Shown here: piece by piece, positions 21,452 to 62,500 of the stretch
Layout: the number at the start of each line of letters is the position of its first letter
Numbering within the stretch: position 1 is the stretch's first letter
Origin: Eutreptiella sp. 'Long Island Sound 2002'
Lineage: Eukaryota > Protista > Euglenida
Reading direction: 5' to 3'
NCBI GenBank assembly: GCA_964036045.1
Contig: OZ038378.1
Span: 137,826,001-137,890,000, forward strand
DNA: 64,000 bases
The notes under the pieces: model-generated
The model's database searches: none
Seen by the model: the letters and a program-made list of their open reading frames with translations, nothing else
What the model was told of the DNA's origin: nothing
Translations under genes and position numbers: made by a program

Positions 21452-21510
<59 letters not shown>

Positions 21511-21577
21511 CGTGAGGTGACCAAAGAACCAAGCACACACATTTCCCTACACGTGCCCCCCGGCACACACACACACA

Positions 21578-21618
<41 letters not shown>

Positions 21619-21625
21619 ATACACA
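21355..21625 (+). repeat. (CA)n microsatellites
   Basis: Long near-pure CA runs. Confidence 0.95.
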
Positions 21626-21629
21626 CCCG

Positions 21630-21960: not shown

Positions 21961-22020
<60 letters not shown>

Positions 22021-36370: not shown

Positions 36371-38356
36371 CCTGCCCGCTACCGGTTTCTCTGTCTTTTG
36401 CTGACGCACTACGGCGTACGTTTGCCTGCGATGGACTGTTGGGAACCCCACCATGGTCTTTTATGCCGAACGGGGGGGTCACCCATACCAAAGCCGCGAT
36501 GTGTTTTGGAAGGGATAGCCCGACACTATGGCCTTGCAAACCGTACGGGGAGGTAGGTGTAAAAGCCGTTGTACCTTCGCTGGTCTCTTTCCAAACTCCT
36601 ATAGCCATGCGCCATGTGTGTTCGGAAGTGTCAACCTGGAGGAGTGATACGCCGTCTTTTGGTTTATCTACGCATCTCATTGCGAACCTCCTGTCAGAAC
36701 ATGGCACTGGTACTTACGTTGTATTGCTCCCTGTACCATCCTCGGCTATACGACACATGCACCACCTACGGGATAAAGGCCGGGCAACACAAGTGGCGAT
36801 GCAGATTTCTATCAAGCGCTTGCTCCCTTCCCACTGCAAGTCTTTTGCTCAATCCTTCACGACATTGTCCTGCGACTGCTGGGTCGTTTACCCCCCGTGC
36901 AAGCCACCTCCACTGTGCCATGCTACATTTTTTAATTCATTTGCATCGGTTGTGTCTAAGTATGGTGGAACCATTTCAGCACTACCGCCGATGCTACTGA
37001 CCTACCGTGTGCAGTCTAAGGAGTGCAGGGAGTATTCCTCCTGGGTGTACGAGCAGGAAACTGCTTTGCGCGCACACAAACTGCAGGCTAAATGGTGCAC
37101 GAAACGGCGTGTGGTGAGAACCTCTTTCTGATGGGAGGGTGTAGCCCAGTCATATATGACATATGATGTTGTCAATAGGCCTATACACATGTGTAAATCC
37201 GCTTTAGGGCGAAAAATATCCTCATGGACTCAGGTAAACCAGGACGTGTCAATGCTCACGGCTGGGACCTGGATCTATGTCATTTGGTCCCCACACGATA
37301 CCTTTGTGTATATTGGGCAGCGGGTGCCAAATTCTCTGAACGCCATGCGTTCCAGAGAATGGTAGAGCACATACAAGAGGCCCGGGACTGGCGGTTGCTA
37401 CACCGTAACACTAGACGAAAAAACCCATTCTTCGAATGGGTACTGAAACACGGGTTTCATGGGATCCAGCTCTCACTGCTGGCACTCATTCCCCACGGGA
37501 AAGCCGACCTACGAGAGGTCTGGTGGATGCACAGGTTTGCCCGAGCGCTGCTGTTAAACAAATACATCCCTGACCTTCGGGTTCCCAAATGGGCATGGCT
37601 ACTGAAGGTAAACACGTTCAAGAACCACCACGAGAAAAGGGAAAAAATTTCAGCGAAAGCTGAAACACTGCACCGTGCTACCAATTTTCTGCAACCATTG
37701 CGCACGACGCTGTCACTTGCCGAACAACTAAGGTTGGTCGTTGACTCCAGGGAACTTTGCTCTGCAAGCGTTGCAACCCAGGTTTTCACGCGGGCACAGC
37801 GGAATATCCACCGTGAAACAGGGACGAAACTGCCTCGTAAATTTGTGCTGGGTATCCCACTGCTGGACCCTCTAGGAAAACGCGCACTACTGCAGGCAGT
37901 CGTCTCCACGTTCCAGACCAGTACCCAGGTGCCTGCTCTATACCGCGAGTTTTTATGTAAGTCTGTTGTGTGCGTGCGCAAGTCCACCCCATCCGTTATG
38001 TCTGTGTGCCAATCGTATAAGCCGGAACTCACTACAGATGCTTTTGAACGCAAGCTGCGAGATAATTAGTGGCACTGTAACTGTACTGAACTACACGCCA
38101 AGTTTGGCGTTCCACTTGTAAACAGGCATGTTTTTACACGTAATTTCCAATGGCTGAGGCTTCTCTCGCCCGCTTTTGAGCCTGAAGTGTTTGAGCAGAA
38201 CATGAAAAATAGGTTGGTACCATCGTGGAGAGCGGTGTCACACACTCTTGCAAAAGAAGTGAACCGTGCTCTTACCAATCTGCATTTTCTTTCTCCCGCC
38301 TCCCAGGCTACTCTCACGGCCCACATCCTGAACGAAGCCCAAAAAGTGTTTGTCCG
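36371..38356 (+). pseudogene. PLE-C2 ORF2, second segment including GIY-YIG
   Basis: Near-identical to 17325-17820 plus 23184-24676; stops at 37129 and 38067. Confidence 0.88.
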
Positions 38357-38741
38357 TGTACCCTTCGTGAACCGGCCGTTTGAATCCGAGATTCACGGTA
38401 CCGTGAATTTCACCCAAATTAGCTGTGTTTTGCTCGTAACTTGGTGCTATCGTGTGCTTTTGTCGTGCTACCTTCGCCCAAAGTAAGATCCAACAAATAG
38501 GTGCAATTTAGAGGTTTAAAGTCCCCGCATGGTTTAACACATTTGGTGAGATTCGCGTGAATGTGAAATTCACGCACCCAGATTCACGCAGAAATTCACG
38601 GTAGATTCACAGATTCACGAGAATGTGAAATTTGCACGAATTTCGTACGAATTTCGTATGAATTTCGCACAAATTTACCCTCCTTTCCACTCTTTCGCTT
38701 TGTTACAGCTCTCAAAGCCTTCGCATTCTTCTCTTTGAATC

Positions 38742-40603
38742 ATGTCCCAGCAGACTATGTCCCACCTCGCCAGCTCGGCCTCGCGCCCCGAGCCCGCAGC
38801 CGACACCCTCGCCCACTACCAAGCCCTCCCTGTCGCCCACCATCAATTGGAGGAGGCGACGTACGGGTCGGGGGCACTGGGGGTGGATGACGTCGGCTCG
38901 GCAGCCTCCCTCGACCCCTCCCCCGAGGTCATCCACATCGGCATGCGTAGCCCCACCCGCAACTCCTACCTCGGGGGGAGGGAATGGGCCACAACCTTGT
39001 GGAGGGAACTGCGCCGCCAACTCCCCTCCCTTAAATTTCTGCATCTAATCCCTCTCCCCTCCAGTGTTGACCAGCTCCTCAACTCGATGAAGACTAACCC
39101 TGTGGGGAAGCCTAAGGACGTCCACGTCTTGGTGTACCCCACCACTAACCTCGTCCACACCCCCCCCCCCACTGCGATATGGTGTGCCTGCAGGATCTTG
39201 CTGCACGTGCACCGGCAGACCACTCTTTTTTCCCCTTTTCTTGGCACCGTGCCAATTCCCGGTGGTGGGATGATTTGGGCATCGCTTCTATAGCACAACT
39301 TCTTTGCAATGGTACCGTGGTGCCTCATGCGCCCCCCCCTTCATTTCAAGTGAGGCCCCCGTCCGCACCGAACCCGTTCCCGACCCACCTCATGGGGTGA
39401 TGGGCAGCCCTGACCCCAGCCCCGACAGGGTTGGCCCCTCTCAGCAGCCCATCAACTTTATTGATGGGAACGGCTACATTGTGCTTCGGGGGCTTGTGGA
39501 GGCACGGGATTGTGAGGTGGGGTGGAACAAGGTGATGAAGGCGTGGGGCAGCGGCGACGAAAAAGTCGTTGCAAAAAATTTTGAGCTCCTTTTCAACGCC
39601 GCGCGGAGTGAGGAGCAGGCCAAGGATCCTGGGCTCCCCCGGCGTTGGCAAAGCAAGAGCACCTTGGGGTCGGGGGTGGGGGGGCCTCTCTTGAAGAAGT
39701 TCCACCCCCACCTCACCGAAAGTGTCCCTGGGGTTGGGGGCCTCCACCCAATGACGCCGGGCGGCGTCATTGTGGCGAGTGTGGGGAGTGGGCCGCAGCT
39801 CCCCCACACCGACGTCGCCACCCACCCCGAGGTCCTCCCCCCCCACGACAGGGAGGTCTCGGGGTGCCACCTGAGTAGCTTCCTCTGCTTGTCAGAGGAC
39901 TACCAGGTGGCGGTGCAGGCGGGGACGGCCCTGGGGGAGGCGGGGGAGGCGCGCTGGGACGCTGTTGAGCTGCATCGGGGGGACATGCTGCTGATGGTGG
40001 CCACCAGCCGCCATCATGGATTGCCTGCCCTCCCCGACTCCAAGGATGGGCTGCAAGGGGCTCTTTTCAGCTTGTGGACCCCCGACCCCCGACACAAACA
40101 CCACCAGGCCAACACCACACACTTGGACGCCACCCCCCCCAAGAAGGCCCTGGACGTTGCTGGGGATTTGTCCAGCTGGGACTGCCCCAGCGTGGACCAG
40201 GTGTTGTGGGCGGGGAAGGGGGCGGTTGGGACGGTGGGGTTGTGGGAGGGGGATGCAGCCCAGGCCCTCTTCGCCGACCCCCCCCAGACGGTCCCGGCAG
40301 GCCCCCCCCACCTGCCTCTTCCACCCCACCTTCATATCCCGGTTGGCCCCGGCCTCCGACCTCGCCGTCATCGAGGTCGGCGAGTAGTGCATGCTGTTCT
40401 TCGTGGGCAGCGTGCACTAGCTGGAGGTCTGCAAGGGGGACAATGTTGATGCCGAGTCGGAGATCCACTTCGCCATGACCGGCATTGCCCCCCCGGTGCG
40501 GCCGACCACGCTGTGGCACCTGGTGAACACGGTCCCAACGTGGCGGTCGCCCAAGTGAGCGAATACCGGGGCATGGAGCATCACCTGCCCATGCGAGTGC
40601 AAG
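38742..40603 (+). pseudogene. X2 gene A exon 1: N-terminal domain, PhyH-like Fe(II)/2OG dioxygenase domain, C-terminal CPCxC (frameshifts and stops)
   Basis: GYIVLRGL...PQLPHTD...SSFLCLS...LHRGDMLLM...RHHG; HxD at about 39804, distal H at about 40012. Confidence 0.72.
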
Positions 40604-40878
40604 GTGTGCTTGTGTGTTTGCTTTGTTTATTGGCAAATTGGACGAAATTCACGTGAAATTCGTACGAAATTCGTGCGAATTTCGTACGAATTTCGCACCA
40701 ATTTCACGTGAATAAATTTGTGTGAATATTCTGGAAATGTGAAATTCGTACGAAATTCGTACGAATTTCGTACGAATTTCTGTGACGATCGTCCAATTTG
40801 CTCCTTTTGCTCTTGCATTGCCTCGTGTGCACTCCCCCTTTCTCAATTTGTGCCTTGCACACCTCCGCACATCTGCAG
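40604..40878 (+). other. Putative GT-AG phase-0 intron holding a TTCGTACGAA array
   Basis: AAG|GTGTGC ... pyrimidine tract CTGCAG|GTC; removal fuses CPCECK to VPFTAWSP in frame; same arrangement in Z. Confidence 0.75.
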
Positions 40879-41829
40879 GTCCCGTTCACCGCTTGGTCGC
40901 CGGATATTCGGCACCACACCAAGCGCAAGTACAAGCCCCGGCCCCGATTGCCCGAGGAGCACGCCGAGCCCCCCGAAGGCCCCGGTGGCGACCAGCCCGC
41001 AGGCACCGGTGGTGGACGGCCGCCGAGCGAGGCCGGCAGTGTGCGCAGTGAGGGGTCGCGGCGCTCTGGACGTTCGGGACGCAGCGAGGCCAGCACCGCC
41101 ACGGGGCATGTGGCGCGCGAGGTGGTGGTGCCCATGCCGTCCCGCGACGAGTTGGGCGACGCCAACACCGACCCCCCCCTGGACAGGGTCACACTGGCCG
41201 CCAGGCAGCCGGATCCGGCCTTGACCCAGCAGGTGCCGCCCGGGCCCGATGGGCGTCAGCGGCATCTCACTACCGTGTGGGACATTGTGTTGGAGTCCCG
41301 GGGGGTGCAGGGCACCTTCCGCATCTCCTTCCCCTGCCCCATTGTGGTCAGGGGGGGGGCCAACCTGCCTGCGGGGCAGGAGCTGGTGGGCATGTTTGCC
41401 TACCGGCTTGTGAGTGGGCATTGGCGGGTGCAGACCGGGGTGTCGCGGATCGGGGAGGAGGGGACGGTGACCAGGGGTGGGGTTTTTGGGCTGAATGTGC
41501 TCACGGGTTGGGAGCAGCGGAGGCCGGAGTGGGCGGACGTGGCATGGCTTGCCATGCGCGTCCATGTGGGGAGGCAGCGGAAGATGGGGGTGGCTGACGT
41601 CATTGACGTCGAGGAGGACGAACCCCCCACGCGCAAGCGGAAAGGGCGCCCCGAAGGGGACACGCCCCCCCCCCTGTTTGCGATATTTTCTGCGGAACTG
41701 TTTGTATTTTTTTGGGGGTATGCTATGCCCCCTGACGTGTTACACTGCTGGCTGAGTGTCAGCCGGAATGACAACCACTGGATTGGGTGTGTGATAACCC
41801 ATGAGCACCATCCTGAGCTTGCTTTGTGA
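40879..41829 (+). CDS. X2 gene A exon 2, unknown function
   Basis: Open frame; homologous to Z 62142-63000 (GMFAYRLVSGH, VAWLAMRVHVG). Confidence 0.6.
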   Translation, partial: VPFTAWSPDIRHHTKRKYKPRPRLPEEHAEPPEGPGGDQPAGTGGGRPPSEAGSVRSEGSRRSGRSGRSEASTATGHVAREVVVPMPSRDELGDANTDPPLDRVTLAARQPDPALTQQVPPGPDGRQRHLTTVWDIVLESRGVQGTFRISFPCPIVVRGGANLPAGQELVGMFAYRLVSGHWRVQTGVSRIGEEGTVTRGGVFGLNVLTGWEQRRPEWADVAWLAMRVHVGRQRKMGVADVIDVEEDEPPTRKRKGRPEGDTPPPLFAIFSAELFVFFWGYAMPPDVLHCWLSVSRNDNHWIGCVITHEHHPELAL

Positions 41830-42181
41830 GGGTCAACGAGGGCAGAAGGATGAGGCTTCGGCAGAAATTCTGTGACAGTCATGTGAAATTCGTACGAAAT
41901 TCATACGAAATTCGTACGCCATTTGTACGAATTTCGTGCGAATTTCGTGCGAATTTCACATTTTCAGAATATTCACACAATTCTATTCACGTGAAATTCG
42001 CACGAAATTCGCACGAATTTCGTACGAAATTTGTACGAATTTCGTACGATTTTCGTACGAATTTATGTGAATTTCCTCAAATTGCATGCGAATCACAGTA
42101 GAGAGAGTTGTCTGCGGGAGGGGGATGGTAAAAACCTTGCGATGACTGCCTCCCTATTCAACAGGTCTTGTATCTCACACC

Positions 42182-43903
42182 ATGCCGCGGACCAAGGAGC
42201 CATTCCATCTGCTAGCGGATCGTACACGACGGCGGCGCCTACAAGAGCTCCAGCAGGTTGTTACCAAGGAGCTTGCAGCACCCTACACCGTCAAGTACCT
42301 GCCCGACACGGGGCAAATAGTGCTTACCCCCGAAAGAAGAGTTGTAGCCACCGTCCAGCCTGAGCCCACCCTGGAGGAGAGGTTGATTATGGCCGTCTGG
42401 AGGATCCGGTCATTGCACCTCTCTAGGACGGAGTCCCGGTACCTAGTGGGGAGCATGACGTACGGTGTGGCATGGGGCCAGGTGTACGGCATGCTTCGGC
42501 AGCTAGCGTTGCCGGAGTCCCGGGCGTTCACCGCCTATACGGGAGACGACACGGCCATCAATGGTGCGGCCTGCTACCTACCTGACCGCATCAGCCACCT
42601 ATTCAAGTGTTGACCACCCCCACACTCGGACATCATGCAGCCCGGGGACTGACGGCTGCATTGGTTGCCTATTGCGGTGGATGGTACATCGAGGCATGAG
42701 GCCTCGTACGTCCATTGGATGCTTGGTGGCACCGCCAGCCCCAACCAACTATCTAGTTGGTGGCTACTAGCGGGCAGTGAAAAGTGGGAGACCCTCTATG
42801 CGGCCTCCCAGGAAATTGATTTTGATGATGAGTTGCGCAAGGCCGCAACCGTAAGTTTTACGGATACGGCAGGGAATGATAGGCAGTCCCTTTTTTTTCT
42901 GTGTGCAGATGGTAAAGCACAGGTGCTCATGGCGGGCTGCCAAAACTGGAAGGCAGAATCCCCTGGTGCCACTATGTGTTGGGTCTGCATGCGTAACCGT
43001 GCTCTGTGCCTTGCTACCTTTGGCACAGCAAGTGCGATAGACGGCAACTGGGAACCGGCCGTTGCCATAAATGCTATATATAGGACCATTACGAGTGATA
43101 GGCGAGTGCCTGATTATGGCCTCCATGGGGTCCTTCGTGTCCTGTTGTGTGCAGTCAACGGGACACGGGACCTAGTTGTACAATTGACAGGGAAGGCACC
43201 GGCCACTGTGGCACGCACCATGCTGCAACCGGTTCTAGATGAGGCACGGCTTGCTGCACGAACTTGCACCCGTGCGTTATTAAATAATGACAAGGCAAAC
43301 AGCAAGGGGAAGGTGAGGATGGAGTGTGCTGCTGCCATCCATTTCATGCGGAATAGGGGTTGGGAGAAGATAATAGATGCTTGCCTAGAGCAGCCTAGTG
43401 TGAGGCAGCATCAAGTAGGGGGAAAAAGTTGGGAGTCGGTATGCAAAACGTGGTGGGAGAATTTTGCAAGCATGTGTGTCTACGCGTGGCGTTCCGCATG
43501 GTTCTCCGGGGCCGACTTGGGGCGGCTCCGGAACCATAGCATAGCCATGGGCGCTGCCCACAATGAGCTCCAGTGGGGCAAACTTCTGTGGACGCATCTT
43601 TGGATCGACCACATGTATTATTTTGCAAAGAAGTGGAGAATCTTGTCAAAGTTCTCCTGCTTTGCCATGGAGGGAAGTCACCGGAGGCTGAAGCGCATGT
43701 TGCGCAACAGCGGGGGCCTAAGCCTCCTCCGGGGGAGACTAGGGGTGCAAGTGGTTGTGGACAACCACACCATTGACGATAGCCTTTGGTTGCATGGGTG
43801 GGATGCGACCAAAAGGGCTCAACATGGGCAAGGGCTCATAAGTGTGCAAACGTATGCAAGCCGCACAAGAAGACGGCTTCTAACCGACATGCAGCACGTT
43901 TAG
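42182..43903 (+). pseudogene. X2 transposase, RAG1/Transib-CACTA clade DDE (in-frame TGA at 42611 and 42650)
   Basis: KEPFHLLADRTRRRRL; AVDG; CADGK...CWVC; PDYGLH; THLWIDH-X19-E. Confidence 0.82.
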
Positions 43904-44408
43904 ACTCTACAGAGGCGGTTCCGGTGCCGCAAGAGACGGACATGAGATCACCTTACGAACCCAGACCATTGTTGCCTGTGACCGGGGTGCATGCTGGGGG
44001 GCCTACTAGGGGTGTGAGGACAAATCAGGGGGTGCACACCGGTAACATTTGTGTAAAATCACGTGAATTCACGTGAAATTCGTACGAAATTCGTACGAAA
44101 TTCGTGCGGAATTCGTGCGAATTTCGTACGAATTCACGTGAATTCACGGCTGTGAATCGGCTACAGGCTTGCCGGGTTCCGGCGCCTCTCGTTTTGGGCA
44201 CGGTTCGGACATGATGGATGCTTTTGGGGCGGGACTTTCATTGGATGATGCGTAACAAAGCTAGGGGAGGAATTTTGGCCCCTCAAAGCCCTTGGAATGA
44301 ACCAAGAATATGGCATTTTCCCCCAAAAACCTCAAATTTTGGGTAAATTCACGTGAAAATTACGCAATTATTCCAACGGCCACTTAACGGCCGTTCACGA
44401 AGGGTACA

Positions 44409-46893
44409 CGGGCTACGTCCCTGTGCCCGCGAAAACACCACGTGTCGGTTGTCCAACAACAGGTGAAACTGCTACCACCTTCATTTGTCCTGGGCCCTTT
44501 CGACAAGGGCACGTCCAAGCTATGGATGGCTTGTGAGGGATATTTTTTCCCGCAGTTCCATAGCAATTTCTACCAGGCGCCGAAACGTTTTACTGAAATT
44601 ATAAGGTCACAGTCTCATTTACACGTGTCGACTGTACTCTACAACTACCTGGCGTCTGGTGCCGGGGCCTACCTGCGTACCAAAGTCACGATATGTACTC
44701 AATTGAGGTACACCCCATGCCCCCAAAGGGGTCCCCCTCCCCGGGGGACCTGATGCAAAGTCCCATTTGGCTCCCGTGCCTGTGGATGCTCTGCGGCACG
44801 GAGACATTGGCCTGTTTGACTTTTGTGCCCAGTCACGACTGTGTACATAGATTGTGGAGCACCCCAACCAAGAAGGGGACACGTCGAGCATGTGTGATTG
44901 AACATCATATGAATGCACTGGCAGTATGAACCATATGGATGTATGACAGGCGGTGGTGCACGCCTGTACGTTTCAGCAAACCACCTTTATGGCCAAAGTC
45001 AAGCCGCAGCCACCAGTTCCACTTTGTGACCCCTTGCGACACCGTGTCACTGAGCGGCTTACGCACGTCTCATCGCTCGTGAAAAAACATAATGCATGGT
45101 GCAAGGAAAACGAAAAGCCAAAACAGGCGGTTTTACCGATGTCCAATGAATGCCGCGGTTTCTGGACACAACTTGTGGACCACGGAACTTGCAAACTAAA
45201 ATCCTGCAAGAACCGGCCGTGTGAATCACAGGGGGCTAATTCACGTTCAGCTCGCTCTTTAACCAGGGGCCTGCGTACCCCACGGGAAAGGCTTCCTGGT
45301 GTAGCTCGGGGAGCCCCGCCTCAGGAGTCCCATACGAATGTGTGTGACTGCCAATGGATGGTACGGCCCCCGCCTGAGCCCCCACCTGACCAGCCCCCCC
45401 GTGCGCAGTGGACACCGCGACGTGGACGCCACTCAAGGCCCGTCTCGATGTCAACTATCTTGTCCCTGGGCTGTGTCTCCATGCAACTTGTTGCCTCTTT
45501 TGTTGGTGAGCAAGACGGGATGGCCTGGCTTCTCTCTAGCAAACAAATTCTGTTTAGGGCTATTACCTTCATCCGATTTTCTGATTTGTACTGGACGAAA
45601 TTGTCTCGCCTATCTCGATGGGCGTTGCAATCATGCACACTTATCAGTTGTCCTATTTTTCAGGCGTCGGTATTCAGTGATTTTCTGCAGCCGTTGGCCA
45701 ATATACCCAAACTCCCAATGGGTACGAGCCTGAACCAAATGTGCAGACCCCATACGAAGTTATTCCCGGTGCCTAACCCGCAGTTGCTCGTTAAATACAA
45801 GTCCAAGGAACATAAGGCCGCCATGAAAGCAGGGGAAGTGTTAACGCAGGATAAACACCCTTACAGGAGACTTGGAAAACTCATAGGGAGATGTGTGTCA
45901 CTTTTGTGGAAAGAAGCGATCACAGTACTGGACTCCAAGGAAATTGTGGCGATGAGCGATATCCTTCACCCCGTACGTGAATGGTTGTCAAAACTGACCG
46001 ACCCCCCACCGGGGACTGAATTCCGTTGGTTGGAATTTGACATCAAGGAAATGTTTCCTGAAATACACCGGGATGATTTGCTGCCGGCGCTCTGTTGGAT
46101 ACATGAACAGGTTTTACAGAAAAGGAAAAAAAGAGGAACACTCCGGTTCTTCGTTTCAAAAGATGGAAATCGCAAATTGGATAATTGCTCTCGAGGGGCT
46201 AGAGATGCGTTCCATGCGTTTACGTCTTCCGATGTTGTGCACTATGTTCTGTTCGAAACATTCGTTGGGGACTGCTTTGTAAATCTGTCATCCGTGATCA
46301 GCCAGAATACAGGCATACCCGTTGGAGGCTCCTGCTCAGCACAACTGGCCAGCCTGGTGTTGATCTACCGAGAAAAATCGCAGGATTTGCAGGGCTCTCT
46401 GAACTGTGGTCGTTGGTTGCGGTATAGGGACAATTTTCTGTTTCTTCGGGCGATGCCACTGGACAGCGCTGGAGCGAATCGAGTGCTGGAAGCGACCAGA
46501 ACTGATCTAAAACAGCTTACAGGAATGGACATCACAGTGGAACAGGATAGCTCCACACTGAGATTTCCGGAGTGCATGCTTCGTGACCCACTGGGGGATC
46601 ACCCACTGTCCTTACCCGATTTCTTGTGCTGCATAAGTGACTCCACACCTCCTCGGGTTGAAAAATTACTGGACCCGACTGCTCCAGGATGTGCTTCTAT
46701 GCTCCGATCGCTTGTACCTAGCTGGGTCAAGAAAGCTGCACATTACAGACTGTCACGTTTCACGGCCGAACGCAATCTGGAGTTTGTACAGCAACTGCTC
46801 ACACGGAAAGCTTACCCCACTAGTACGTGGAAGCCACTTCTACGGAAAGGAGCTAGAGCATGGGGCCTGAATCCACCGCAATCACATGCATAA
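44409..46893 (+). pseudogene. PLE-C2 ORF2, final segment: RT (interrupted by the 302-bp insert)
   Basis: GPFDKG; EFDIKEMFP; GIPVGGSCSAQLA; LRYRDNFL. Confidence 0.9.
44691..44992. mobile_element. 302-bp insertion with an 11-bp TSD-like flank
   Basis: CCAAAGTCACG (44680) and CCAAAGTCAAG (44993); absent from copy 1 at about 24946. Confidence 0.75.
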
Positions 46894-48335
46894 AGGAATG
46901 TCCTGCCTAACCTTGAGCCATGCCAGTGAAGGTGTATGTGTTGCTGAATAGACACAGGGTCTTGTGTGAAGCTGGGACAAACGTACCCGAATTGTACTAT
47001 ATGCATTTTCTGCATGCTTGTGAGAGTCTGTGCGAATTTCATGGTTTGCATATACAGGCTGTTCTACAGAAACCCCATGTGGCAGCTGTGCTGTTTGATT
47101 TGTTGGCTTCTTTTGCACTGCCTGTGTCTTGGAATCTGCCAAATTGAGCTGCACCACTACACGCCTGACGACGTTGAACAGCATCCTCGGCTAGATCAAC
47201 TTCAGAAGATTTAAGTTGTCTATGCATGGGACACAATGTGATTGATCGAACGTTTTTGCATGGCAATTGGTATGCTTTTGCTTGCTTGTTCCAGCACAAT
47301 CGAAACAAATTTTTCAAGAAGTTTCATCGCTATGTGCCTTTGAGTTGCATCATGCATGTTGCAACATGGGTCCATCCTCAACCTTCAACCCTAAGCATCA
47401 GTTTGAAAAGAGGTCCCCCCCCCCCCCATTACGCAACGGGCGCCCTGCCCACAGCAGGGGCCTGGCAAAGCAAGCACCCGGCACCGAACGGTATAAACAA
47501 TCTCAACCAAGTACTGCAGCCAAAAGCCGGACGCTGATCCCGCTGTCTTTGGGTACGGTTTCCATGCAAATAAGGTGAAGAGTATTGCGTTGTGCTCACC
47601 CATTGCCTGTGCATGCATCTGTTGTATGTCCCCTGCATGAAGTGGTGATGAATTGGGTTGTGCTTGCCCTTTGGGTGTGCCCGGGGGTTGCAGAAAGGGT
47701 GCCTTCTTGTGGGTTCCTGAAAATTTCTACTAGCCGCGGCTAGAGGGGGGGGGGGGGGGCGGGGGGGGCGGGGGGGGTCACCGGTCACCTCAAAACCTCC
47801 AGCCGCGGCCAGCCGCGGTTAGAATCGCTCCGAAGTACAAGGACTCCCCGAAGGCTCATTTGATTAATTTGCTCCGAATGCTTAAGAGGAAGGCAGGCAC
47901 GTAACTACGAAGTAAAGGCCCAAAGTGTTTCTCAGGTAAAAACTAGCCAAGAACTAGGTAAAATGGGTAAAATTTCAATAACTTGCTTTGTGCGTGTTTG
48001 CTCGCTTTGCCCTCGCTTAGGATGTGTAACGGCCACATTTGCATCGAAACAGGTTGAAATATGGGCGAAAACGGAGGTGTTTTGCCACTTTTACGTGTCC
48101 CGCACCACACCACCCCCCTGTACATGCAATTATTGCCCTTTGCAGCCTTTTTGCGAGCGTAAAAGGGTGTATTTGGGTGATTACCACAAGTTCAGCTCGT
48201 ACCCAAAAAGGGTAATTTACACACGTAAAAGGGTGTATTTGCTTGTCTCGTGAATTCCGCCGCGGACGCAAATTAGGTCTTTTGCGCACGCAAAATCTAT
48301 GTAATTGCCTCTTCACTCCTAGGGTCTTCTCTTTC

Positions 48336-50261
48336 ATGGGACATGCGTGGCAAGAAATCCAAAGCCAAGGCCGCTGCCCAAGCCCCCGGGGACCCGCATC
48401 CACCGCCCAAGCCCACCCCTTCTCCCCGCACTACCCACGAGCCCACCAAGGAGGTTGTTGATGAGTATGTGAAGGTGGTAGGTGTGGAAAATGTGGCGGG
48501 AACTTGTATCCAGGTGTTGGATTGTGCACTCTCGGTGAACGAGATTACGGGGTTGCCGGCTATCCCCGAGGATGTTGCTCAGTGAGAGAGCGGCTGCAAA
48601 AGTTGCAGCAGGAAAACGCTGAACCCTTGAGATATTTGTTGAGGGTTAACCTGCAGGCCGGTCCAGTTGCTTTGACCAAGGGAGTTTTGAGCAATTTAGC
48701 TCCGGGCCTATACCATTGGTTGAGCCCTGGCCCAACGGGGATAATCCTGCAACTTACCGCACATATGTGAACGGCATTGTTTGCCATGATGCAACCTTCC
48801 CAATGCGCCCAACGGCAATATGTGTCGGTGTACCATGGTCAGACCCCGTCAAGGTGAAACATCGGGAAGAGCGCCTCGAGACGGACACGTACATTTTTTT
48901 CCGGGAGTCCAAATTTGCGGACTGGTCGGCCTACGGAGCGATTTAGTCCGTGGGTCGGCGCGAGACCTTGAAAGGACCGGCCATTCGTGATTTGACGCAG
49001 CCCACAATTTTTGTATCACAAGACGCATTTTTTGGGTCTGGTATGGGTTGTCCGTCGCCAGACATCGCAGTGAAATGTTCCGTGTCTCGGCTTCCGTTGC
49101 CGGATCTGCCCTCTAAGACCCCCGAGGAGTATGAGGCCATAGGCTACCGTTTGGTGGAGGACATTCTGCCATCGGACCTGGTGGATCAGTTGTGTGCCCT
49201 GCAGTTGCAGGGAGATGAGAATTGGGAAGACATTCTCCTTTAGCGCCACAACCAAGGTGGTGGGCGCCGGCAGACCGCCCCGGGAACGGTGAACAAGTGG
49301 CTCCCCTCGGAAATCAAGTGGCGTTTGCTGCGCATTTTGGCAGACCTTTTCCCGGTGCTGGATGACCTGGAGGACAAGGAGCCTTGGTTGGTGGAACGGA
49401 TGGAGGCCCCCCCGTGGTGGGGCTACCAATCGCCGCACCGCGATTTTATGCTTACGTTGCGGGGTGCCGCGGACACAAGGGTGGTTTTCATATCCCTGCA
49501 CGATGTTCCCCCATGAAAATCTTTGCAAATTGCACCGGGGACGTGCCATGGCTACTACACGTCCAACTGGCACGTGGTCCTGCAAAAGCGTGGCAGTGTT
49601 TTGCTGATGGATGGAACGTTGATCCATCGTGGAGCTGGTGGGCCGGGGAGGACGATTTTTTCCCCTTTGTGCCGGAAGAATTCCGCACACCCCCGAATGT
49701 GGTGGAACCGGAGAATGTCCCGGACCTGATGTTTGTTGAGCCGGAGGTACCGGAGGTGGGAGAGGCGGAGGAGGACCCCCCGGCAACCTCTTCGGGCACT
49801 GATTTGCAGCCCCTTGCACCACTTGCCCCAAAGTTCAGTTGGTAGGCGCCCCTGAAAACGCCCCCGGGGATGGAGAAGAAAGTCCCCAACATGGGTGCCG
49901 TGTGGGTCATTGGGAGTGGGGTTGGGACCGCTGCCATCAGTGTGTGCCCATTCACAAGGGAGGGACTCGGGCCAGAGGAGGAGAATGCCGAGCAGTGCTC
50001 GATGCCCTGGTACCATCGGTGGTGGATCCCCCTCCCATGGCGGACAACATGGCGCGGGTCCCCGTCTCCCCCGGCTGTGTCTACTTTGGGTTCTGTCCCA
50101 GCAGCCTCGTCCTCACGCGCGCAGCCAGCGCCAGTGAGATGCATTGGGCTTCAACGGCGATGCACTATACCGCCTCAATGCCGAGCATGCAAGCCGAGTC
50201 GGATGGCAAGGTCAAGTGTGACCACAAGACGAAGGAATATAAGTGCCCATGTCCGGAGAAG
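48336..50261 (+). pseudogene. Y gene A exon 1 with PhyH-like Fe(II)/2OG dioxygenase (about 49130-49680) and C-terminal CPC
   Basis: GYRLVEDIL...QSPHRD...VFISLHD...QIAPG...RGSVLLMDGTLIHRGAGGPGRTIF; several stops and frameshifts. Confidence 0.75.
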
Positions 50262-50521
50262 GTGTGTAATTTTTGCGCGCGCAAAATGCATCGTTTGCGC
50301 ATCCGCTATACGCATGGCGAGAACGCACAATGGGTCATTTACGCACGCAAAATAGGGTATTTACATCGTTGCCTGATTTCAACCTCTGACGCAAAATAGT
50401 TCGTTTACGTGCGTAAATTCATGTATTTGCGTGTTCACCCAATCTCAACCCGGGACGCAAAGTGTGTCATTTGTGCACGCAAAATTCAAGTAAATTCATG
50501 CATTTCCTTCATATCTTTTCG

Positions 50522-51830
50522 ATTCCCGCGAACTTCTTGCCCTTCGCGGTGGTGGATCCCGGGCCCGCCGACAGCAGTGCTGGTTTCAGCGCCAGAGGTG
50601 GTGCTGGAGCCCAACCCGGAGACAGTGGCGCGGCTGGTGAAGCCGCCGATCTGGTGACGTTTCCGGAACTTGGTGATTTCAACGTCCGGTACGTGCATGG
50701 GTATGGCAAGGTTGCCAATGTGGAGGCGGGAATGGTTTTTTTGGAGGATTGTTCAAGGTTACTTCAATGAGAGATCTTCTGGGGCATTTCGGTGCGGCCC
50801 TTGGGTGCCAAGACCGGGTCTGGACGGGAGGCGGGAGGTCCGTCGGTGACGTTGTTTTGCCCGTTTTGGGTGAAACACAAGAAGGGGCAAGAGGAGAAAG
50901 TGTTCCTCGTTCCCTTCCTGTACATGCGGCCACCCAGCTCGCACACGTGGGCCCTCCTCGGCACCCAAGACCAGCTAGGGCAGCTGCAGAAAGTGCGTGG
51001 GGTGCCACTCAGTGCAATTGGAGGTGTCCTACCGGGGACACATGTGGTTGGTGGTGCGGCGCAAACGGCGGCACTCACTGCGAGGGTGGAAGCCTTTTGG
51101 CTGAGGTGGGAGAAGGAAGCGCGTAGCGACATGTCGCGCAAGGTGGAGGCTCATGCACGGAAGCTGGCCCAGGGCAAGGATGTGGCTTCGGAATCCTGTG
51201 CTGAAAAAAAATCTTCCGTGGTTTTTGGGAAGAGGTCCCACGGCCGCCCCCCCAAGGCGCCCGGAAAGGTGCCGGGGGTCACTCCGGCCGGGCAAACCTC
51301 CGAGCTGCTGCGGCTGCAGTTGGAGAATGAGTTGCTGAAGGGGAAGGTGGCGCTGCTAGAGGACCAGGTGGCGGAGCGCGAAGCACAGCTGGTTACTGTG
51401 TGTCGCGAGAGGCAGCGGGCCGATGAGCTGCTGATGCAGCGGGACAGCCAGCTGCTGGCGGAGCGCAGCATGGCCAGTAAGGCGGAATCGGGTTGGCGAA
51501 CCTAGGAGAAGAAGCTCCCGGACGAGCTGGAGGCTGCGCGTGGGCAGCGCGGGACGAAGTGCACCGCTCCTAAGCTTGTGCCTATGCAGGACGCGAGTGC
51601 CGCGGAGGACAAGGCGTGGCTGATGTAGTCCGCCGTTGAGTTGCGACCGGGACTGCCGCAAGCAGCAACGGCCACGGCTCTGCTGGAGGATAGCCTCAAG
51701 CGAGCCGACAAGGAGGCTGCGCCCCCTCCGTCGTCTCCAGAGGCGTTGGACGCGTTGCTGAAGAAGTACGGGCTCGGAGACATCCTCCAATCGCCGAGAA
51801 GAAAGGGGCAACCGAGCCCCTGACCCCAAC
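50522..51830 (+). pseudogene. Y gene A putative exon 2 with a coiled coil; boundaries approximate
   Basis: LPFAVVDP resembles X2 VPFTAWSP; ELLRLQLENELLKGKVALLEDQV heptads; expected acceptor reads TCG rather than AG. Confidence 0.5.
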
Positions 51831-51859
51831 GGGGGGGTCGCCGCGGTCTCAGGGATCTG

Positions 51860-52300
51860 GGGCCCGGTGAGGTGGCCGGCGGTGATCGGATGGTGATGGT
51901 GCCGGTGAGTGATGGTGATCGGATGGTGATGTTGTTGGTGGGAGATGGTGATTGGATGGTGATGGTGGTGGTGGGTCATGCGGATCGGATGGTGATGGTG
52001 TTGGTGAGTCATGGTGATCGGATGATGATGGTTGGTGATCGGACGGTGACGGTGTACGTGGAAGATGGTGATTGGTGACGTGGAGGTCACCCGGAGGCAA
52101 CGGTGTTGCCGCCTACGTGTCTTTCATTTCAAAAGTGAGGGGGGAATTGTGTTGTTGTCATTCATTCATTTTCAATGTCAATGTGTCATTCATTTCAAAA
52201 GTGAGGGTCACTGGTGGGCCTGGGGGGATTGTGTTGTTGTCAGTTAGTTGTTTTCAACGTCAATGTGTCATTCATTTGAAAAAAGAGGGTCACCGGTGGG
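51860..52300. repeat. GGTGATCGGATGGTGAT tandem array followed by CATTCATTTCAAAAGTGAGGG repeats
   Basis: Direct inspection. Confidence 0.8.
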
Positions 52301-52661
52301 TTTTATGTTGTCTGCCTGTCTTTAGCGCCTGTTTGGGTGGTTGCGGTTCTTCAAGTTGAATTTTTCATTGATCTTCAACCCTTTCAACTTCTTCGCAGGA
52401 TTCTTCAATGGCCTTTACACCTGGGACGCAAAAACACCCTTTTGCGTGCGCATATGGCACGTTTTGCGTGTCGACTGTTTTTCGAGTGAGAACGCAAAAA
52501 CACCTTTTTGCGTGCGCAAAAGGCCCTTTTTGTGGTGCTAAAGAAAGTAGGGTGGGTACGCAAATAGGCGCATTTACGCACGCAAAAACGCGGTAATTGT
52601 GTCTCCTACCTGCAGTGCAATGCGCTTGTGCCGCATGCGTCCCAGGTGTTCTTTCTATATT

Positions 52662-54371
52662 ATGCCGCTGCATCCGTGGCAATTCCACCACTTGCCCCTG
52701 GGCAATCGCCAAGGCTGTGGTGAACGGAACAGCAGCTTGCATCGTGCGGTGCGTGACATTATGGGGGAGGATTGGCATGTGCGAATGCGGAGTGGGGTTA
52801 CGAATGTGGTGGACGTGTACATGGATGTCCCCACGGATCATCAACTGGATTTGGAGTTGAATGCCATGGCAATGTTGTGGGAATCGAGGAAGGAGGGGCA
52901 AAGTGTGCGGCGGCTGCAGTACAGCCGGTCAACATCCACTTGGCATTTCTCCATGGGCGAATCGTCTCCGTGCGAAAGACCTTGGGTGCCCCCCTACCCA
53001 TTGATTTCGTGTTGCATACCCTTCTCTTGGCTCTTGGCGGTAGTGATTTGATTGGGTCCAGGGTGAATCTGAAGGAAAAGCTGCAGCTTATGTGGCAGCA
53101 TAACCCCCCATTAACACAAGGTAACCAAGTTTTGGTGGGGATTTCCATTGATGGCACCAAACTTTGGCAACGTTCTTTTGAGCACTTTGCGGTAGGGGAG
53201 TTGGGGAGCCGTCTACCTTTGGGTTCATGGGTGCTACTCCAGGGCTCGGAGACCGCCCAAATTCTTCGCGACCTGCTCTACTAGCAGAATTTGAACCTTG
53301 TTGTGTTGGCTGCGAATGGGATGCAAGTTTTGAATGAGGGAGGGTTTGCAACTCCCGTTGTGTGTGTGATTATTGCTGACACCAAGGCGCAAGTTGGCCT
53401 CTCGGGCTGTCGCAATTTCAAGTGTAACGACCCTTTGGCACATGTGTGCTGGCTTTGCGGGGGGACCCATCGTCATTGTTCGGGTGCGTTTGGGCAGGGA
53501 ATTTCAATTTTGCTCAACGTTTGGCATTGGGGGGGGGGACATTACCAGCAGTCCTCCCTTTTCAAAGACCCCCCCGACTTTGGACTCCATGGGGTGCACT
53601 GTTTGGTGCATTGTGCCGGCAGTGGGTTGGTTAAGGCTTTGATGCATCACCATGGGTGGACGAAGGGGGGGGCATTGGTTGGGGTGCAGTGGTTTTGGGA
53701 TGACATCAGGGTTAAGAGCCGTACGGCCACGGCGGCTGATTGTGAGCACGAGAAGGTGCCAAAGAAGGCCGTGCGATTGCAAAGTGCCGCGGGGGCATGG
53801 GTGAAACGGCAAGGCTGGGCTTGCATTGCCGACTACTCGGAGGTGTCGATCTTTTACAAGTCCCGGTGCAAGTTGGGGGGGGGTTGCAATGACATGGACT
53901 GCTTGTTGGCGTTTGTGGGGAGAGAAATTTGCAATGACCCGTGACCTTGTGTGGAAGGAGGGGAGGTAGGACCTTCGCGATATGAATGTGTTGAAAGGTG
54001 CTTTGTCCGAGATGGGGAGTGCCCACAAAGCTTGTGGGTTTGTGGTGACCCTATGGGCCCACCTTTGGCAGCACCACATGTGGGGGATCGCGAGGGAATA
54101 GGGCACCCTGTCCGCATTCAGTGCTTTCAGGGGTGAGGGGAGGCATCAGTCGTTGAAGAGTGAGATTAGGAAGAGGAGCTGCAAGGGGGGAAGTAAGAAA
54201 CGGGGATCTCGCCTACGGGGGGCACGCCGAGCAATGAGTAAGGGGTGGCCCGAAGTGCTTCGGAACGACAATTTGGACTTGGGGTTGTTTAGCGGGGGTT
54301 CAATGTGTGGCAGCCTTCTTGGACCCGCCAAGAGGCATATGGGAGTGCCGAGCAGTACTGGGAAGGGGTGA
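52662..54371 (+). pseudogene. Y transposase, homologous to the X2 transposase (stops and frameshifts)
   Basis: SIDG; IADTK...CWLC; PDFGLHG; LWAHLWQHHMW...FSAFRGEGRHQSLK matches X2 LWTHLWIDHMY...FSCFAMEGSHRRLK. Confidence 0.82.
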
Positions 54372-55485
54372 TGCGTAAGGGGAAGTTGTAGGGTTTCTCG
54401 CATGTTTGTCTTACAATCTTACAATTTTATTGTGCATACTTTGGTCATTTGGTGGTGGAATACCACTTGGACATGTGTGACTCAATGATTGGAACAATGC
54501 AAAGAAAGATCCCTGCAAATGCCTCCATGTTTGCTTGCACGCATGGCATGCATTGGACCCGGGATGTGGGTTTGTGTTTGGGTGTAAAGGGGGAGGTCCA
54601 AAAGCAGGCGTTTACCTGGATTTTGCGTAGGTAAAAGGGGTATTTTGCGTCCCGAGTGAAAAAAAATCTGGTAAGTAAAATTGGCAGTTTACGCACGAGA
54701 AAGGGCCTTTTTAGGCACGCAAAACCAAGTAAAATACTTGAAGCATAGTACCAGGCCTCGCAAGTACAAGGGAACACTGCGGGTAGGGGGAGGGGACCAC
54801 CGCGGGTGTTTCCAACATAGAAGCCAAGCCATGGGGGTATTTTTAGCATGCCGGATTTGAATTTCATACTCATTTTTGACCAAAATGATGTTTTCGACCA
54901 CTTCCTAATTTTTACCCCATTTTTACTTCTTTCTTTGGCTATTTACTGAGAAACATTACTTCGTAGTTACACATCAGCCTCGGGCGATTGGCACACCACT
55001 ACAAGCAGTGCATTGACGCCATGGAGCATTCTGTTTGGGCCGAACGCAGGTTTGAGTTGGGCTGCGCCGCGGGAGTGGTGGGGAATGTGCCCGGTGAAAC
55101 GCTCATCAGGCCCCTGAAGTTTCGAGGCCACTACTGCAAGTCTGTCCCGGAGGCTACGCGCATCATCAAGAGTCGAAGTGGCCATTATCACGGAAACTTA
55201 GAGAGCGATGGACGGGACAATTTTGACCTCGTTCAATGTGCTCGTATGCATCTCATTTGTGGTTTGTTGAATTGTGCTCCATTGTAACGGGTTTTTCTGC
55301 TGCTGCCTTAGGGAATGTTACACGGCATCTTATATTACTCAGGTAAAAAAGGGGGGAATGGGGGGTCCAACCATCCCTTGAGTAACAATGATCGATTTAC
55401 CTGGTGCCGTGTATTTTTGCATGGTTGCCGCCCATTTTTGAGTAACAGGGACAGGGAGGGGTAGGGGGTCAAGGTCTGGTGTTAC

Positions 55486-59533: not shown

Positions 59534-62500
59534 TGTACTCTTCGTGAACCCGCCGTTTGAATGGGACATCCACGGTAACGTGAACTTGACAACTTTTTGC
59601 TCTGTTTTGCGCGTAACTTGGTGCCATCGTGTGCGTTTTTCGTGCTATCTTCGCCCAAAGCATGGTCCAACAAATGTGTGCAATTTAGAGGCTTTAAGTA
59701 GCCACATGGTTCAACATATTTGGTGAGATTCGGTCGAATTTGAAATTCACGCACCCAAATTCACACATAAATTCACCCTAGGTTCACAGATTCACGAGTC
59801 TTTGAAATTCGCACGAAATTCGTACAAAATTCGTACGAATTGCGTACAAAATTCGTACGAATTTCACGTGAATTCGCCCCAATTTCCCTTGTTTCGCTTT
59901 CTCACAGCTCTCAAAGGCTTTATTTGCCTTTTCTTGTGAACATGTCCCAGCAAACGTTGTCGGAGCTCCCCTCCTTGCAGTCCCGCCCCGATCCTAGTGC
60001 CGACACCCTGGCGCAGTACCAAGCCCTCCCTGTCGCCCACCACCAAATGGCGGAGGCGACCTACCAGTCTGGGGCACTGGGGCCAGACCATGTAGTGGGC
60101 TGGGCAGCATCCCTCGACCCCTCCCTTGAGGCAATTCACATCGACTTGCGCAGCCCCTCCCGCAACTGTTGTCTTGGGGGAAGGCCTGGGCGACAAATTT
60201 GTGGAGGGAACTCCGCTCCCAACTCCCTTCCCTTAATTTTTTGCATCTGACCCCTCAACCCGCCACCATTGACCAACTGCTCAAGTCCATGCGTACCAAC
60301 ACGGTGGGGAAGCCCAAAGGCGGCCACGTCTAGATGTACCCCACCACTAACCTTACGTATACCCCCCCCCTGAATGCCACATGGTGTGCCTTCCGCATCT
60401 TACTGCAGGGGCAGCAACTGACCATTTTTTTTGCCCTTCACCTGGCACCTTGCTAGCCCACGGTGGTGGGAGGATTTGGGCATCGCCCCTTTCCATCCCA
60501 CCATCCAAGCAAAGGTTCACATCCCCGACATCACCCACCCCACCTTCTACAGTACAAGTTCTTTGCAATGCTACCGTGGTGCCTCATGTGCCCCCCCCCC
60601 CTTCATTTCGAGTGAGCCCCCCCTCCGCACCGAACCCCTTCCCCAAACCCCTCATGGGGTTCTGGGCAACCCTGACCCCGCCCCCAACAGGGTTGGCCCC
60701 TCCCAGCCACCCCTCAACGTTGTTGTAGGGAACGGCTACATTGTGCTTCGGGGGCTTGCGAAGCACGTGATTGCGAGGTGGGGTGCGGGAAGGTGATGAA
60801 GGCGGGGGGCTGCGGCGACGAAAAAGTCGTCACAAAAAAATTTGAGTGGCTGTTCAACGCCGCGCGGAGTGAAGATCAAGCAAGGTATCCGGATCTCCCG
60901 CGGTGTTGGCAAAGCAAAAACTTCCTGTACCAGGGGGTGGGGGGCCCTCTTTTAAAGAAGTTCCACCCCCCCGTCATGGAAAGCGTCCCTCAGGTTGGGA
61001 AGCTCCACCCAACGACACCGGGCAGCGTTATCGTGGCGAGTGTGGGGAGTGGGCCACAGCTCCTGCACACCGATGTCGCCACCAACCCCGAGGTGCTCCC
61101 CTACGACAACAGGGACATCACGGGGTGTCACCTGAGTAGCTTCCTCTGCCTTTCGGAGGAGTACCAGCTGGCGGTGTAGGCGGGGACGGCCCTGGGGGAT
61201 GCGGGGGAGGTACGGAGGGACACCATTGAGCTGCAGAGGGGAGACGCGGTGCTGATGGCGGCCACAAGCCGCCACCATGGGATGCCTGCCCTCTCCGACT
61301 CCAAGGATGCGCTGGAGGGGGCTTGTTTTAACTTGTGGACCCCCGAAGCCAAGTACGGCCACCACCAGCCCAACACCACGCACCTGGACCCCCCCCCCCC
61401 TCGAGGCCCTGGTTGTTGCTGGGGATTTGTCCGGCTAGGATTGCCCTAGGGTGGACCAGGTGTTGTGAGTGGAGAAGTGGGTGGTTGGGAGGGTGGGCTT
61501 GTGGGAGGGGGGTGCTGCCTAGCCCCTCTTCGCCAACGCCCGGGAGGCGGTCCTGGCCGGCCCCCCCACCTGCCCCTTCCACCCCACCGTCCTCTCCCGC
61601 TCCGCCCCGAGCTCCGATCTCGCCGTCATGGAGATCGCCGAGCAGAGTATCCTCTTTTTCGTGGGGAACGTGCACCAGATCGAGATCTGCAAGGGGGACA
61701 ACGTCGATGCGGAGTCGGAAATCCACATCGTCATCTCGTCCGTTGCGGCCCCTGATGCGGCCGACCACGCTGTGGCATCTCCTCAACAATGCCCCAGCGT
61801 GGCGGTCGTTCAAGTGTTCGAAGGCTGGGGCATGGTCAATCACATGTCCATGTGCTTGCAAGGTGTGCTTGTTTGTGTGTTTGCTTCTTCATTGCCAAAT
61901 TGGACGAAATTCACGTGAAATTCGTACGAAATTGGTATGAAGCTCCTACGAATTTCGTACCAATTTCACGAGAATGGCTGGGTGTGAATACAGATGGTTA
62001 CATGAAATTCGTGCGTATTCCGTACGAATTTGACGTGAATCTGCGTGAATTTCGTCCAAATTGTATGTTTCATTGGTGCATTATTCCATCGTTGCTCCCC
62101 CTTCCTCCATTGGTGCCTTGCACACTTCTCCCCGCTTGTAGGGCCCGTTTCACGCCTGGTCGCCGGACGTCCGGAACCAAGCCCGGCGGCGATTCACGCC
62201 GCACCAGCGTGTGCAACTGCCCAAGCAGGAGAGCGAGGTGGCCCACGGCACTGGTTGTGGACGGGCCCCGAGTGCGGCCGGCAGTGAGCACAGTGAGGCC
62301 TCTTGGGAGGCACTGCAGGGAGCCACAGCGAGGCCACCTCCGGTGCGGGGCATGGGCAGTCGGCTGTGCGGGAGGTGGTCGTTCCCATGCCGTCCCGCGA
62401 GGACTTGGGTACCGCCCGCGTTGACCCCCCCCCCCCCCCCGTGCCCGGGTCACCCTCGCCCACGCAGCCGGATCCGGCCTGGACGCACAAGGTGGCGCTT

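Follow-up and report, generated by a model that had tools for sequence, protein, structure and literature searches.

Three-gene transposons with a transposase of RAG1 architecture and a candidate PhyH-like dioxygenase gene in the genome of a euglenid

Why should a cut-and-paste transposon carry, ahead of its transposase, a gene that looks like a dioxygenase? The question is raised by a stretch of 64,000 nucleotides from Eutreptiella sp. 'Long Island Sound 2002' (contig OZ038378.1, positions 137,826,001 to 137,890,000; hereafter the window). A first-pass annotation had described in it RAG1/Transib-CACTA-clade transposons, X2, Y and a partial copy Z, with a gene A encoding an Fe(II)/2-oxoglutarate (2OG) dioxygenase of the PhyH type. 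It knew of no such partner of a RAG1-like transposase, and in our literature search neither a PhyH-type partner nor the lineage found here was described. Our results suggest, with a probability that we put at about 0.6, that the window holds members of a diverse, high-copy group of three-gene cut-and-paste transposons, with a transposase of RAG1 architecture and a PhyH-like gene A that acts for the element.

X2 (38357..44408, plus strand) is a decayed copy of X, a family of three-gene transposons bounded by terminal inverted repeats (TIRs), and is 91-95% identical to copies at two other loci, L001 and L004. Intact X copies are about 7.0 kb long (e.g., L004:7616-14594) and end in TGTACCC...GGGTACA. 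The TIR of X2, TGTACCCTTCGTGAAC, is a perfect 16-bp repeat at 38357-38372 and 44393-44408; five sites of this type occur in the window, against 0.5 expected. Self-comparison and repeat scans, with which we mapped the repeat nest of the window, place X2 within a host repeat, H (36371-38356 and 44409-47217), whose second copy (17325-17820 and 23181-27165) is 96-98% identical to the first. An X-type element has entered each H copy, X2 in one and X1 in the other, and the two insertion sites differ. At the site of X2 the second copy is uninterrupted (24640-24720, reading ...gtccgggatac...) and has a single CG, at 24675-24676. The CG dinucleotides on the left (38355..38356) and right (44409-44410) of X2 are therefore a 2-bp target-site duplication (TSD).

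Y (47900..54971, plus strand), also decayed, belongs to a second family that is distant from X but shares the layout of X2. It has (T/C)GTAACTACGAAGTAA at both ends, its termini are TGTAAC...GTTACA, and the flanking dinucleotides (47898-47899 and 54972-54973) give a 2-bp TSD, CA. Z (59534..62937, plus strand) is a partial X-type copy, comprising the left TIR with one mismatch, an array of short palindromes, gene A, a second array and part of a middle gene, and it aligns with X2 at about 78% nucleotide identity until about 62937. None of the three copies is intact any longer. In X2, three stops interrupt the transposase, gene A has a 58-bp deletion and the middle gene one of about 1 kb; in Y, gene A is broken by two in-frame stops and the transposase is in fragments; gene A of Z is damaged by a stop at 61177-61179. 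The coordinates, TG ends and 2-bp TSDs first given for X2 and Y agree with the TIRs, TSDs and empty sites found here, and the description of X2 and Y as elements with different TIRs and divergent proteins but a common layout also stands, as does that of Z as a copy with an X-type end and gene A. The plan of the elements has to be revised: two genes had been proposed, with one spacer array and two end arrays, whereas X2 and Y each have three gene slots (gene A, a coiled-coil gene in the middle and the transposase) and four phased palindromic arrays.

Gene A of X2 (38742..40620, plus strand) encodes an N-terminal domain, a central HxD...H domain that appears PhyH-like (about 39496-40149; match to the A3 hidden Markov model (HMM), E 1.5e-119) and a Cys-rich tail. 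Its two-frame structure had been attributed to an intron. It is instead explained by the 58-bp deletion, which breaks the frame at 39285; the missing bases are present in Z and in the L004 copy, where gene A is a single open reading frame (ORF) of 526 codons (P0005, 526 aa). That ORF ends at a TAG where X2 has CAG, and the gene runs about 160 aa past the central domain into the Cys-rich tail, which is conserved in X, L002, L003 and L007. Since the tail continues beyond the L004 TAG, the full length of the protein is about 680-700 aa. In Y, the dioxygenase-like part (48947..49726, plus strand) consists of three same-frame pieces with stops at 49241-49243 and 49514-49516, and has the motifs PHRD, LHDVPP*KSLQIAPGT and LIHRGAGGPGRTIF.

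Gene A is a conserved and selected component of these elements rather than an accident of one copy. Searches with gene A and with the transposase returned 133 and 155 protein clusters, respectively, with matches nearly all on Mb-scale contigs. To compare gene order, we retrieved the surroundings of diverged homologues and located the three genes in each; all genomic loci retrieved come from one assembly, ERZ25074135, and L007 is a megahit contig of another ENA sample. The order gene A, middle gene, transposase recurs in L004, a full X copy, and in L002, L003 and L007. Relative to X, the L002 element has 44-49% identity in gene A, 26% in the middle gene and 55-71% in the transposase, and the L003 element 29% in gene A and 25-41% in the transposase. 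In the environmental L007, gene A has 28% identity (E 2e-29, 378 aa aligned), the middle gene is again a coiled-coil one, and the transposase is of a family with about 45% identity to X; arrays with the core TTCGTACGAA (see below) precede the second and third genes. Gene A is always the first gene, and none of the full or near-full copies that we examined, which represent at least five diverged families and the environmental relative, lacks it. Its presence in L002, L003, L004, L007 and the family of an element nested in L001 speaks against a one-off capture.

The ratio of nonsynonymous to synonymous substitution rates (dN/dS), obtained by Nei-Gojobori counts on codon-projected alignments, leads to the same view. 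For gene A, a comparison of X subfamilies (X2 or L004 against Z) gives 0.39-0.42 and one of the X and L002 families (L004 against L002) gives 0.37, whereas the two wrong frames of the alignments give about 1.0 and about 1.6. The transposase has a similar pattern. Gene A is under frame-specific purifying selection, with dN/dS about 0.4 and not about 1, and the proposal that it was retained across divergent families and selected is upheld by these ratios and by the same-position genes. A search of 1.84 billion proteins with the A1 profile gave, among the 150 matches listed, no free-standing cellular homologue and no annotated enzyme: all those listed, which do not include the weakest 91, are element-like copies or fragments. 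A tblastn search with gene A against plasmids gave no match.

What does gene A encode? The HxD...H motifs read PHTD...RHHG in X2, HTD...RHHG in Z and PHRD...IHRG in Y. In the gene A alignment A1, neither H127 nor H197 varies and D129 is conserved to at least 90%, and the triad is also found in L003, L007, Y and the nested L001 family; the His-Asp-His positions are kept across families with only 28-50% mutual identity. The longer motif strings are PHRD...LHDVPP*KSLQIAPGT...GSVLLMDGTLIHRGAGGPGRTIF in Y and THRD...IQPGSHRG...GDCMIMHSTTKHHG in L007, which can also be written HRD...IQPGSHRG...KHHG. The motifs around the triad agree with what we take to be the PhyH pattern, and the PGSH/PGT motif following the HxD strand is presumably PhyH-like as well. 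Further likenesses to the PhyH family (PF05721) are the spacing of HxD...H, the PG[ST]H-like form of the motif after the HxD strand, a GD/GS-hydrophobic-...-H stretch before the distal His, and an Arg after that His in Y (GRTIF) and the nested family (PRLMAFF), at the position whose Arg binds the C5 carboxylate of 2OG. The first-pass annotation had seen this Arg in Y, with Gly in X2 and Z, correctly as it turned out. The strand pattern near the motifs is compatible with a double-stranded beta-helix (DSBH), in models of low confidence (predicted local distance difference test, pLDDT, 33.8 and 40.7).

The strongest PhyH signal among the gene A types comes from a different two-gene element nested inside the X copy of L001 (L001:605-4971, minus strand). 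It has TIRs of about 33 bp (GGGATGCAGCG...), a right end reading ...CCCACTG, an ambiguous TSD of 3-4 bp, an intact upstream ORF of 680 aa and a very distant transposase (A2 profile match, E 4e-11). Its domain matches Pfam PhyH at profile positions 55-202 of 213 (E 0.0031, 18.2 bits) and 2OG-FeII_Oxy_3 (E 0.015, 16.6 bits, cut-off 27), the top two Pfam families for this domain, with 6/20 and 5/20 members of the family matching, respectively. Language-model neighbours in the Atlas lie mostly in PhyH clusters (59-66 of 100) for both the X-type (score 0.94) and the nested-family (score 0.95) domains, which have top clusters in common. We consider it quite probable that the gene A group as a whole is a DSBH-type oxygenase, and from its motifs and language-model neighbours the central domain is likely a PhyH-like Fe(II)/2OG dioxygenase.

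The second protein to be placed is the transposase. In X2 it is a pseudogene of 587 codons (42182..43945, plus strand) with stops at 42611-42613, 42650-42652 and 43901-43903, and is 96-97% identical to the intact 587-aa proteins P0121 and P0122, the latter heading an intact cluster of 203 members. In Y, the A2 HMM matches remnants at 53042-53266, 53309-53836 and 53979-54095 (53042..54095, plus strand); the region of the catalytic Glu was not found there. Over 163 aa the transposases of X2 and Y share 32% identity (E 5e-17) and are thus homologous. Alignment of 12 sequences, environmental ones among them, with 34-86% identity to P0122, has D167, D243, C266xxC269, H472x4H477 and E497 conserved, with the spacing D167-76-D243-23-C266xxC269-203-H472x4H477-20-E497, which is close in plan to D600-108-D708-19-C727xxC730-207-H937x4H942-20-E962 of mouse RAG1 (PMC4914335). 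The language-model neighbours of the X transposase carry RAG1 core domains (RAG1_RNase_H, ZnC2 and ZnH2) and Plavaka domains. A metagenome scan with the transposase profile gave one contig of 2.3 kb, with no flanks.

This architecture directs attention to the CMCT clade, i.e. EnSpm/CACTA-Mirage-Chapaev-Transib-Plavaka-ESTA-Lanisha, characterized by TSDs of 2-5 bp and, in most cases, 5'-CA...TG-3' termini (Kojima 2025, PMC12730594). The X transposase has the CxxC and HxxxxH that the clade carries between the second Asp and the Glu, and the TSDs fall in the range, at 2 bp in X2 (CG), X1 (TT) and Y (CA), with empty sites for X2 and X1. Transib is defined by a 5-bp TSD and TIRs resembling recombination signal sequences, with a CACNGTG heptamer (Kapitonov and Jurka 2005, PMC1131882); here TSDs are 2 bp and TIRs begin TGTAC or TGTAA. 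Transib proper was thus ruled out by its 5-bp TSD and its CA...TG ends, against TG...CA here. We infer from the sequence that the transposase represents a new lineage of the CMCT (EnSpm/Mirage/Chapaev/Transib) clade. Of the RAG1/Transib-CACTA assignment made at first, the part that stands is the RAG1/CMCT architecture of the metal site, and the part that falls, on TSD and ends, is Transib.

Comparison with better-known systems sharpens these likenesses and differences. Transib and RAG1 share with our elements the succession of D, D, a CxxC about 20 residues on, an HxxxxH about 205 further on and an E 20 past the second His, as well as the RAG1 core domains of the language-model neighbours; they differ in the TSD (5 bp, against 2 bp here), in the CACNGTG ends, absent here, and in the D-D distance (108 against 76), and our elements have no HMM match to PDB chains and no RAG2-like partner. 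CACTA/En-Spm elements also have several genes, a short TSD and short subterminal repeats in arrays; in Spm these repeats are bound by the TnpA protein, through which the element becomes demethylated more readily. Unlike them, the elements described here lack CACTA termini, have a TSD of 2 bp instead of 3 bp, carry arrays between genes too, give no Transposase_21/24 Pfam match, and have separate long ORFs with no spliced joints in patchy RNA contigs. The nearest known systems are the fungal CMCT-clade elements with TET/JBP cargo, above all ESTA, which has 2-bp TSDs (TA), a transposase matched to RAG1 by HHpred and TET/JBP cargo (PMC12730594). Points in common are the 2-bp TSD (with ESTA), a gene of Fe(II)/2OG-dioxygenase type and, in some fungal elements, a third gene. 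Yet the host here is a protist and not a fungus, the cargo looks PhyH-like and not TET/JBP, the TSDs are CG, TT and CA (any dinucleotide) and not TA as in ESTA, the ends are TG...CA and not CA...TG, phased palindromic arrays stand before each gene, and no sequence-level match to the known lineages was obtained from our elements.

Several results weigh against the interpretation that we favor. The 2OG-binding Arg is absent from X2 (GALF), Z (GACF), L002 (GALF), L003 (GVMF) and L007 (CTVF), so that most gene A families have Gly, Ala or Cys at this position, a clear departure from PhyH; so is the setting of the domain within a protein of about 690 aa, with flanking domains that have no assignment, and its score, sub-threshold or none. 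The PhyH score of the nested family lies under the gathering cut-off (18.2 against 22 bits). Gene A of the X, Y, L002, L003 and L007 types gave no useful match in Pfam, PHROGs and NCBIfam scans, the sole X-type exception in Pfam being one of 40 members (2OG-FeII_Oxy_3, E 0.038), and sequence searches of the PDB with a single protein and with the profiles A3 and A4 gave none or spurious zinc-finger matches. AlphaFold models from 18 and then 40 sequences reached pLDDT values of only 33.8 and 40.7; a Foldseek search with the better model against the PDB and the Swiss-Prot part of the AlphaFold database gave only noise, a result without meaning because the models stand at pLDDT 34 and 41. Links between gene A types are also thin. 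The gene A sequences of X2 and Y gave no BLAST alignment, and the best A3 HMM match among about 100 Y fragments (49517-49726; E 0.0012, 10.7 bits) is marginal; that the two genes are the same therefore rests on position and motifs. The X-type and nested-family genes did not align significantly in hhalign (local, low-mact or global), the nested-family HMM did not match Y and X fragments, a homologue search with the nested-family domain returned same-family copies only, and tblastx of Y against the nested element gave mostly low-complexity noise. As for the transposase, it has no Pfam match at E up to 10, the RAG1 domain models included, its profile matched none of the PDB chains (hmmsearch at E 10; RAG1 included, Transib presumed), and the X and Y ends are TG...CA where CMCT elements mostly have CA...TG. 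Finally, RNA contigs cover the three genes patchily, and the non-coding ends too. The claim of a PhyH-type dioxygenase is therefore upheld in part, by the HxD...H motifs, the Atlas neighbours and the sub-threshold PhyH match of the nested family, and weakened by the near absence of family matches for X and Y.

These gaps leave room for other explanations of gene A. It could be an accessory DNA- or chromatin-binding protein, similar to TnpA, with no active oxygenase, the HxD...H being a relic or another metal site. The X- and Y-type genes without family or structure match, the Arg missing in X, Z, L002, L003 and L007, the lack of a profile link between the X type and the nested type that touches PhyH, and the extra N-terminal and Cys-rich C-terminal domains would all fit such a protein. 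We nevertheless find it improbable, because His-Asp-His is kept across families of 28-50% identity, the language-model neighbours are mainly PhyH, the same-position gene of the nested family matches PhyH and 2OG-FeII_Oxy_3 over the catalytic region, and Y and the nested family keep the Arg. An enzyme diverged past recognition from the TET/JBP-type nucleic-acid base oxygenases is less probable still. Y, L007 and the nested family have HRD at the first His, which we assume to be found in TET proteins as well; but no gene A type matched Tet_JBP in Pfam at E up to 10, the only families matched are PhyH and 2OG-FeII_Oxy_3, the PGSH/PGT motif is presumably PhyH-like, and the Atlas neighbours are PhyH. 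In favor of this possibility, all dioxygenase cargo reported in PMC12730594 is TET/JBP.

Gene A might also be a mere passenger, a metabolic PhyH-type gene of the host captured by chance and useless to the element. Capture of host genes is known for DNA transposons, and PhyH-type enzymes are mostly oxygenases of small molecules or lipids. Such a passenger would hardly stand first in all the full or near-full copies examined, from at least five diverged families plus an environmental relative, with a divergence that roughly parallels that of the transposase and frame-specific purifying selection between families, and it would be expected to have a free-standing cellular homologue, of which there is none among the 150 profile-search matches listed. 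We regard this as the least probable of the alternatives, and a PhyH-like gene A working for the element as the best account of the data.

How would such an element be organized? Between gene A and the transposase lies the middle gene, which in X2 (40798..41829, plus strand) retains the conserved N part and has lost the coiled-coil C part to the deletion of about 1 kb near 41674-41740; L001 and L004 hold about 0.95 kb more. The C parts of L004 and L002 give coiled-coil Pfam noise only, and in Y the gene (50792..51505, plus strand) has a coiled-coil C part. At L002:11158-12840 it consists of two same-frame ORFs with a single stop between them. We considered whether this stop is conserved across families and rejected the idea, as it occurs in L002 but the X copies (L001) read a sense codon at the aligned position.

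The three gene slots are delimited by four palindromic arrays. The core TTCGTACGAA occurs at 60 sites in the window, mostly in an 11-bp phase, one helical turn of the DNA, against 0.8 expected by chance, and all 60 fall within X1, X2 or Z. In X2, 11-bp phased units of this type form a left subterminal array (38540..38684), and further TTCGTACGAA sites lie in the gap between gene A and the middle gene (40635..40780), upstream of the transposase (41885..42064) and in a right subterminal array (44043..44148). Arrays occur at the second position in L007 and at the third in L005 and L007, and the positions are conserved across families. In Y, the units are ACGCAAAA/TTTTGCGT, with 22/66-bp spacing in the first array (48146..48312) and with three more arrays at 50268-50505, 52414-52604 and 54600-54725. 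Nested miniature inverted-repeat transposable elements do not explain the internal arrays, because no more than five TIR matches occur in the window and the array positions are kept across families. X1 (17821..23183, minus strand) is instructive in this respect. This gene-less X derivative has the same TIRs and a 2-bp TSD, TT, its site being empty in the H copy that hosts X2, and it retains all four arrays (18087-18129, 19741-19922, 21107-21246 and 22846-22909), the rest of its interior being CA/GT microsatellites and tandem repeats. An element without genes that keeps all its arrays argues that the internal arrays act in cis, beyond a role as promoters. A 212-nt fragment of eukaryotic large-subunit rRNA lies inside X1 at 21920-22131 on the minus strand (Rfam, 227 bits), and looks like a captured or inserted piece.

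An intact element would be about 7 kb long and integrate with a 2-bp stagger; its three genes, all on one strand, would encode the gene A product of about 680-700 aa, a protein whose tail forms a coiled coil and a transposase of about 590 aa. The arrays are predicted binding sites of a dimeric element protein, which would help to bring the ends together and would also sit at gene starts. The product of gene A would be an Fe(II) oxygenase that serves the element in trans, and may oxidize a host silencing mark, be it a modified base or a chromatin protein. The removal of a silencing mark as its role is a tentative proposal, made by analogy with Spm TnpA and the fungal TET/JBP transposons (PMC12730594). 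With an active site that lacks the Arg in most families, more than one co-substrate and more than one substrate are conceivable. A bolder version, which we hold to be doubtful, is that of an uncatalogued protist lineage of RAG1 architecture with an atypical Fe(II) oxygenase, retained through deep divergence and recruited to the element's own arrays, where it would oxidize 5-methylcytosine or thymine (the chemistry of hydroxymethyluracil and base J) and so erase silencing, a second, independent invention beside that of fungal TET/JBP.

CpG is mildly depleted (observed/expected 0.76, with TpG+CpA at 1.3) and private changes include a modest excess of CpG transitions, a composition compatible with some cytosine methylation. 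With respect to expression, four estuarine metatranscriptomes contain 6-9% of sampled words, and their contigs gave no credible splice joints along X2. The coverage of non-coding ends makes DNA carry-over possible in these data. The contigs have C at the T of two X2 transposase stops (42611 and 42650), and hence the RNA (or contaminating DNA) comes from other copies, intact at these positions. Contigs of two metatranscriptomes leave X2 at the same point, window position 42548, and continue with GAGATACACAAAGGGGTGCAATGAGC..., which could be an insertion in another copy or another type of junction.

New here are the 58-bp deletion in place of an intron, the plan of four arrays and three genes with its retention in X1, the L007 module, the frame-controlled dN/dS and the sub-threshold PhyH match of the nested family. 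Dioxygenase-carrying transposons have so far been described in fungi; every such cargo in PMC12730594 is TET/JBP, with escape from silencing as the proposed role. Our interpretation, if confirmed, would suggest that enzymatic self-defense against silencing arose more than once, and would widen the range of the RAG1/CMCT clade to 2-bp TSDs, TG...CA ends and internal arrays of binding sites. It would also make available for biochemical testing a family of intact enzymes whose active site is unusual. As the family is abundant and intact ORFs exist, both enzymes can be directly expressed and assayed.

Relatives and neighbors of these elements add some detail. L005, L006, L007 and L008, all environmental megahit contigs, have intact transposases of 561-592 aa that are about 45% identical to X, and carry 11-bp TTCGTACGAA arrays as X does. 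Two of the four adjoin reverse transcriptase genes resembling those of long interspersed nuclear elements, and in L007 and L008 the middle gene is separated from the transposase by long GGGAT/GT microsatellites. Within the window, the host repeat H includes an ORF of 646 aa (44953-46893) with a reverse-transcriptase-like RYRDNFLF motif and no Pfam match. L001 contains a piggyBac-type transposase gene (11136-12776; PF13843, DDE_Tnp_1_7), adjoining a distant member of the RAG1-like transposases (13245-14201) that is 34% identical to X.

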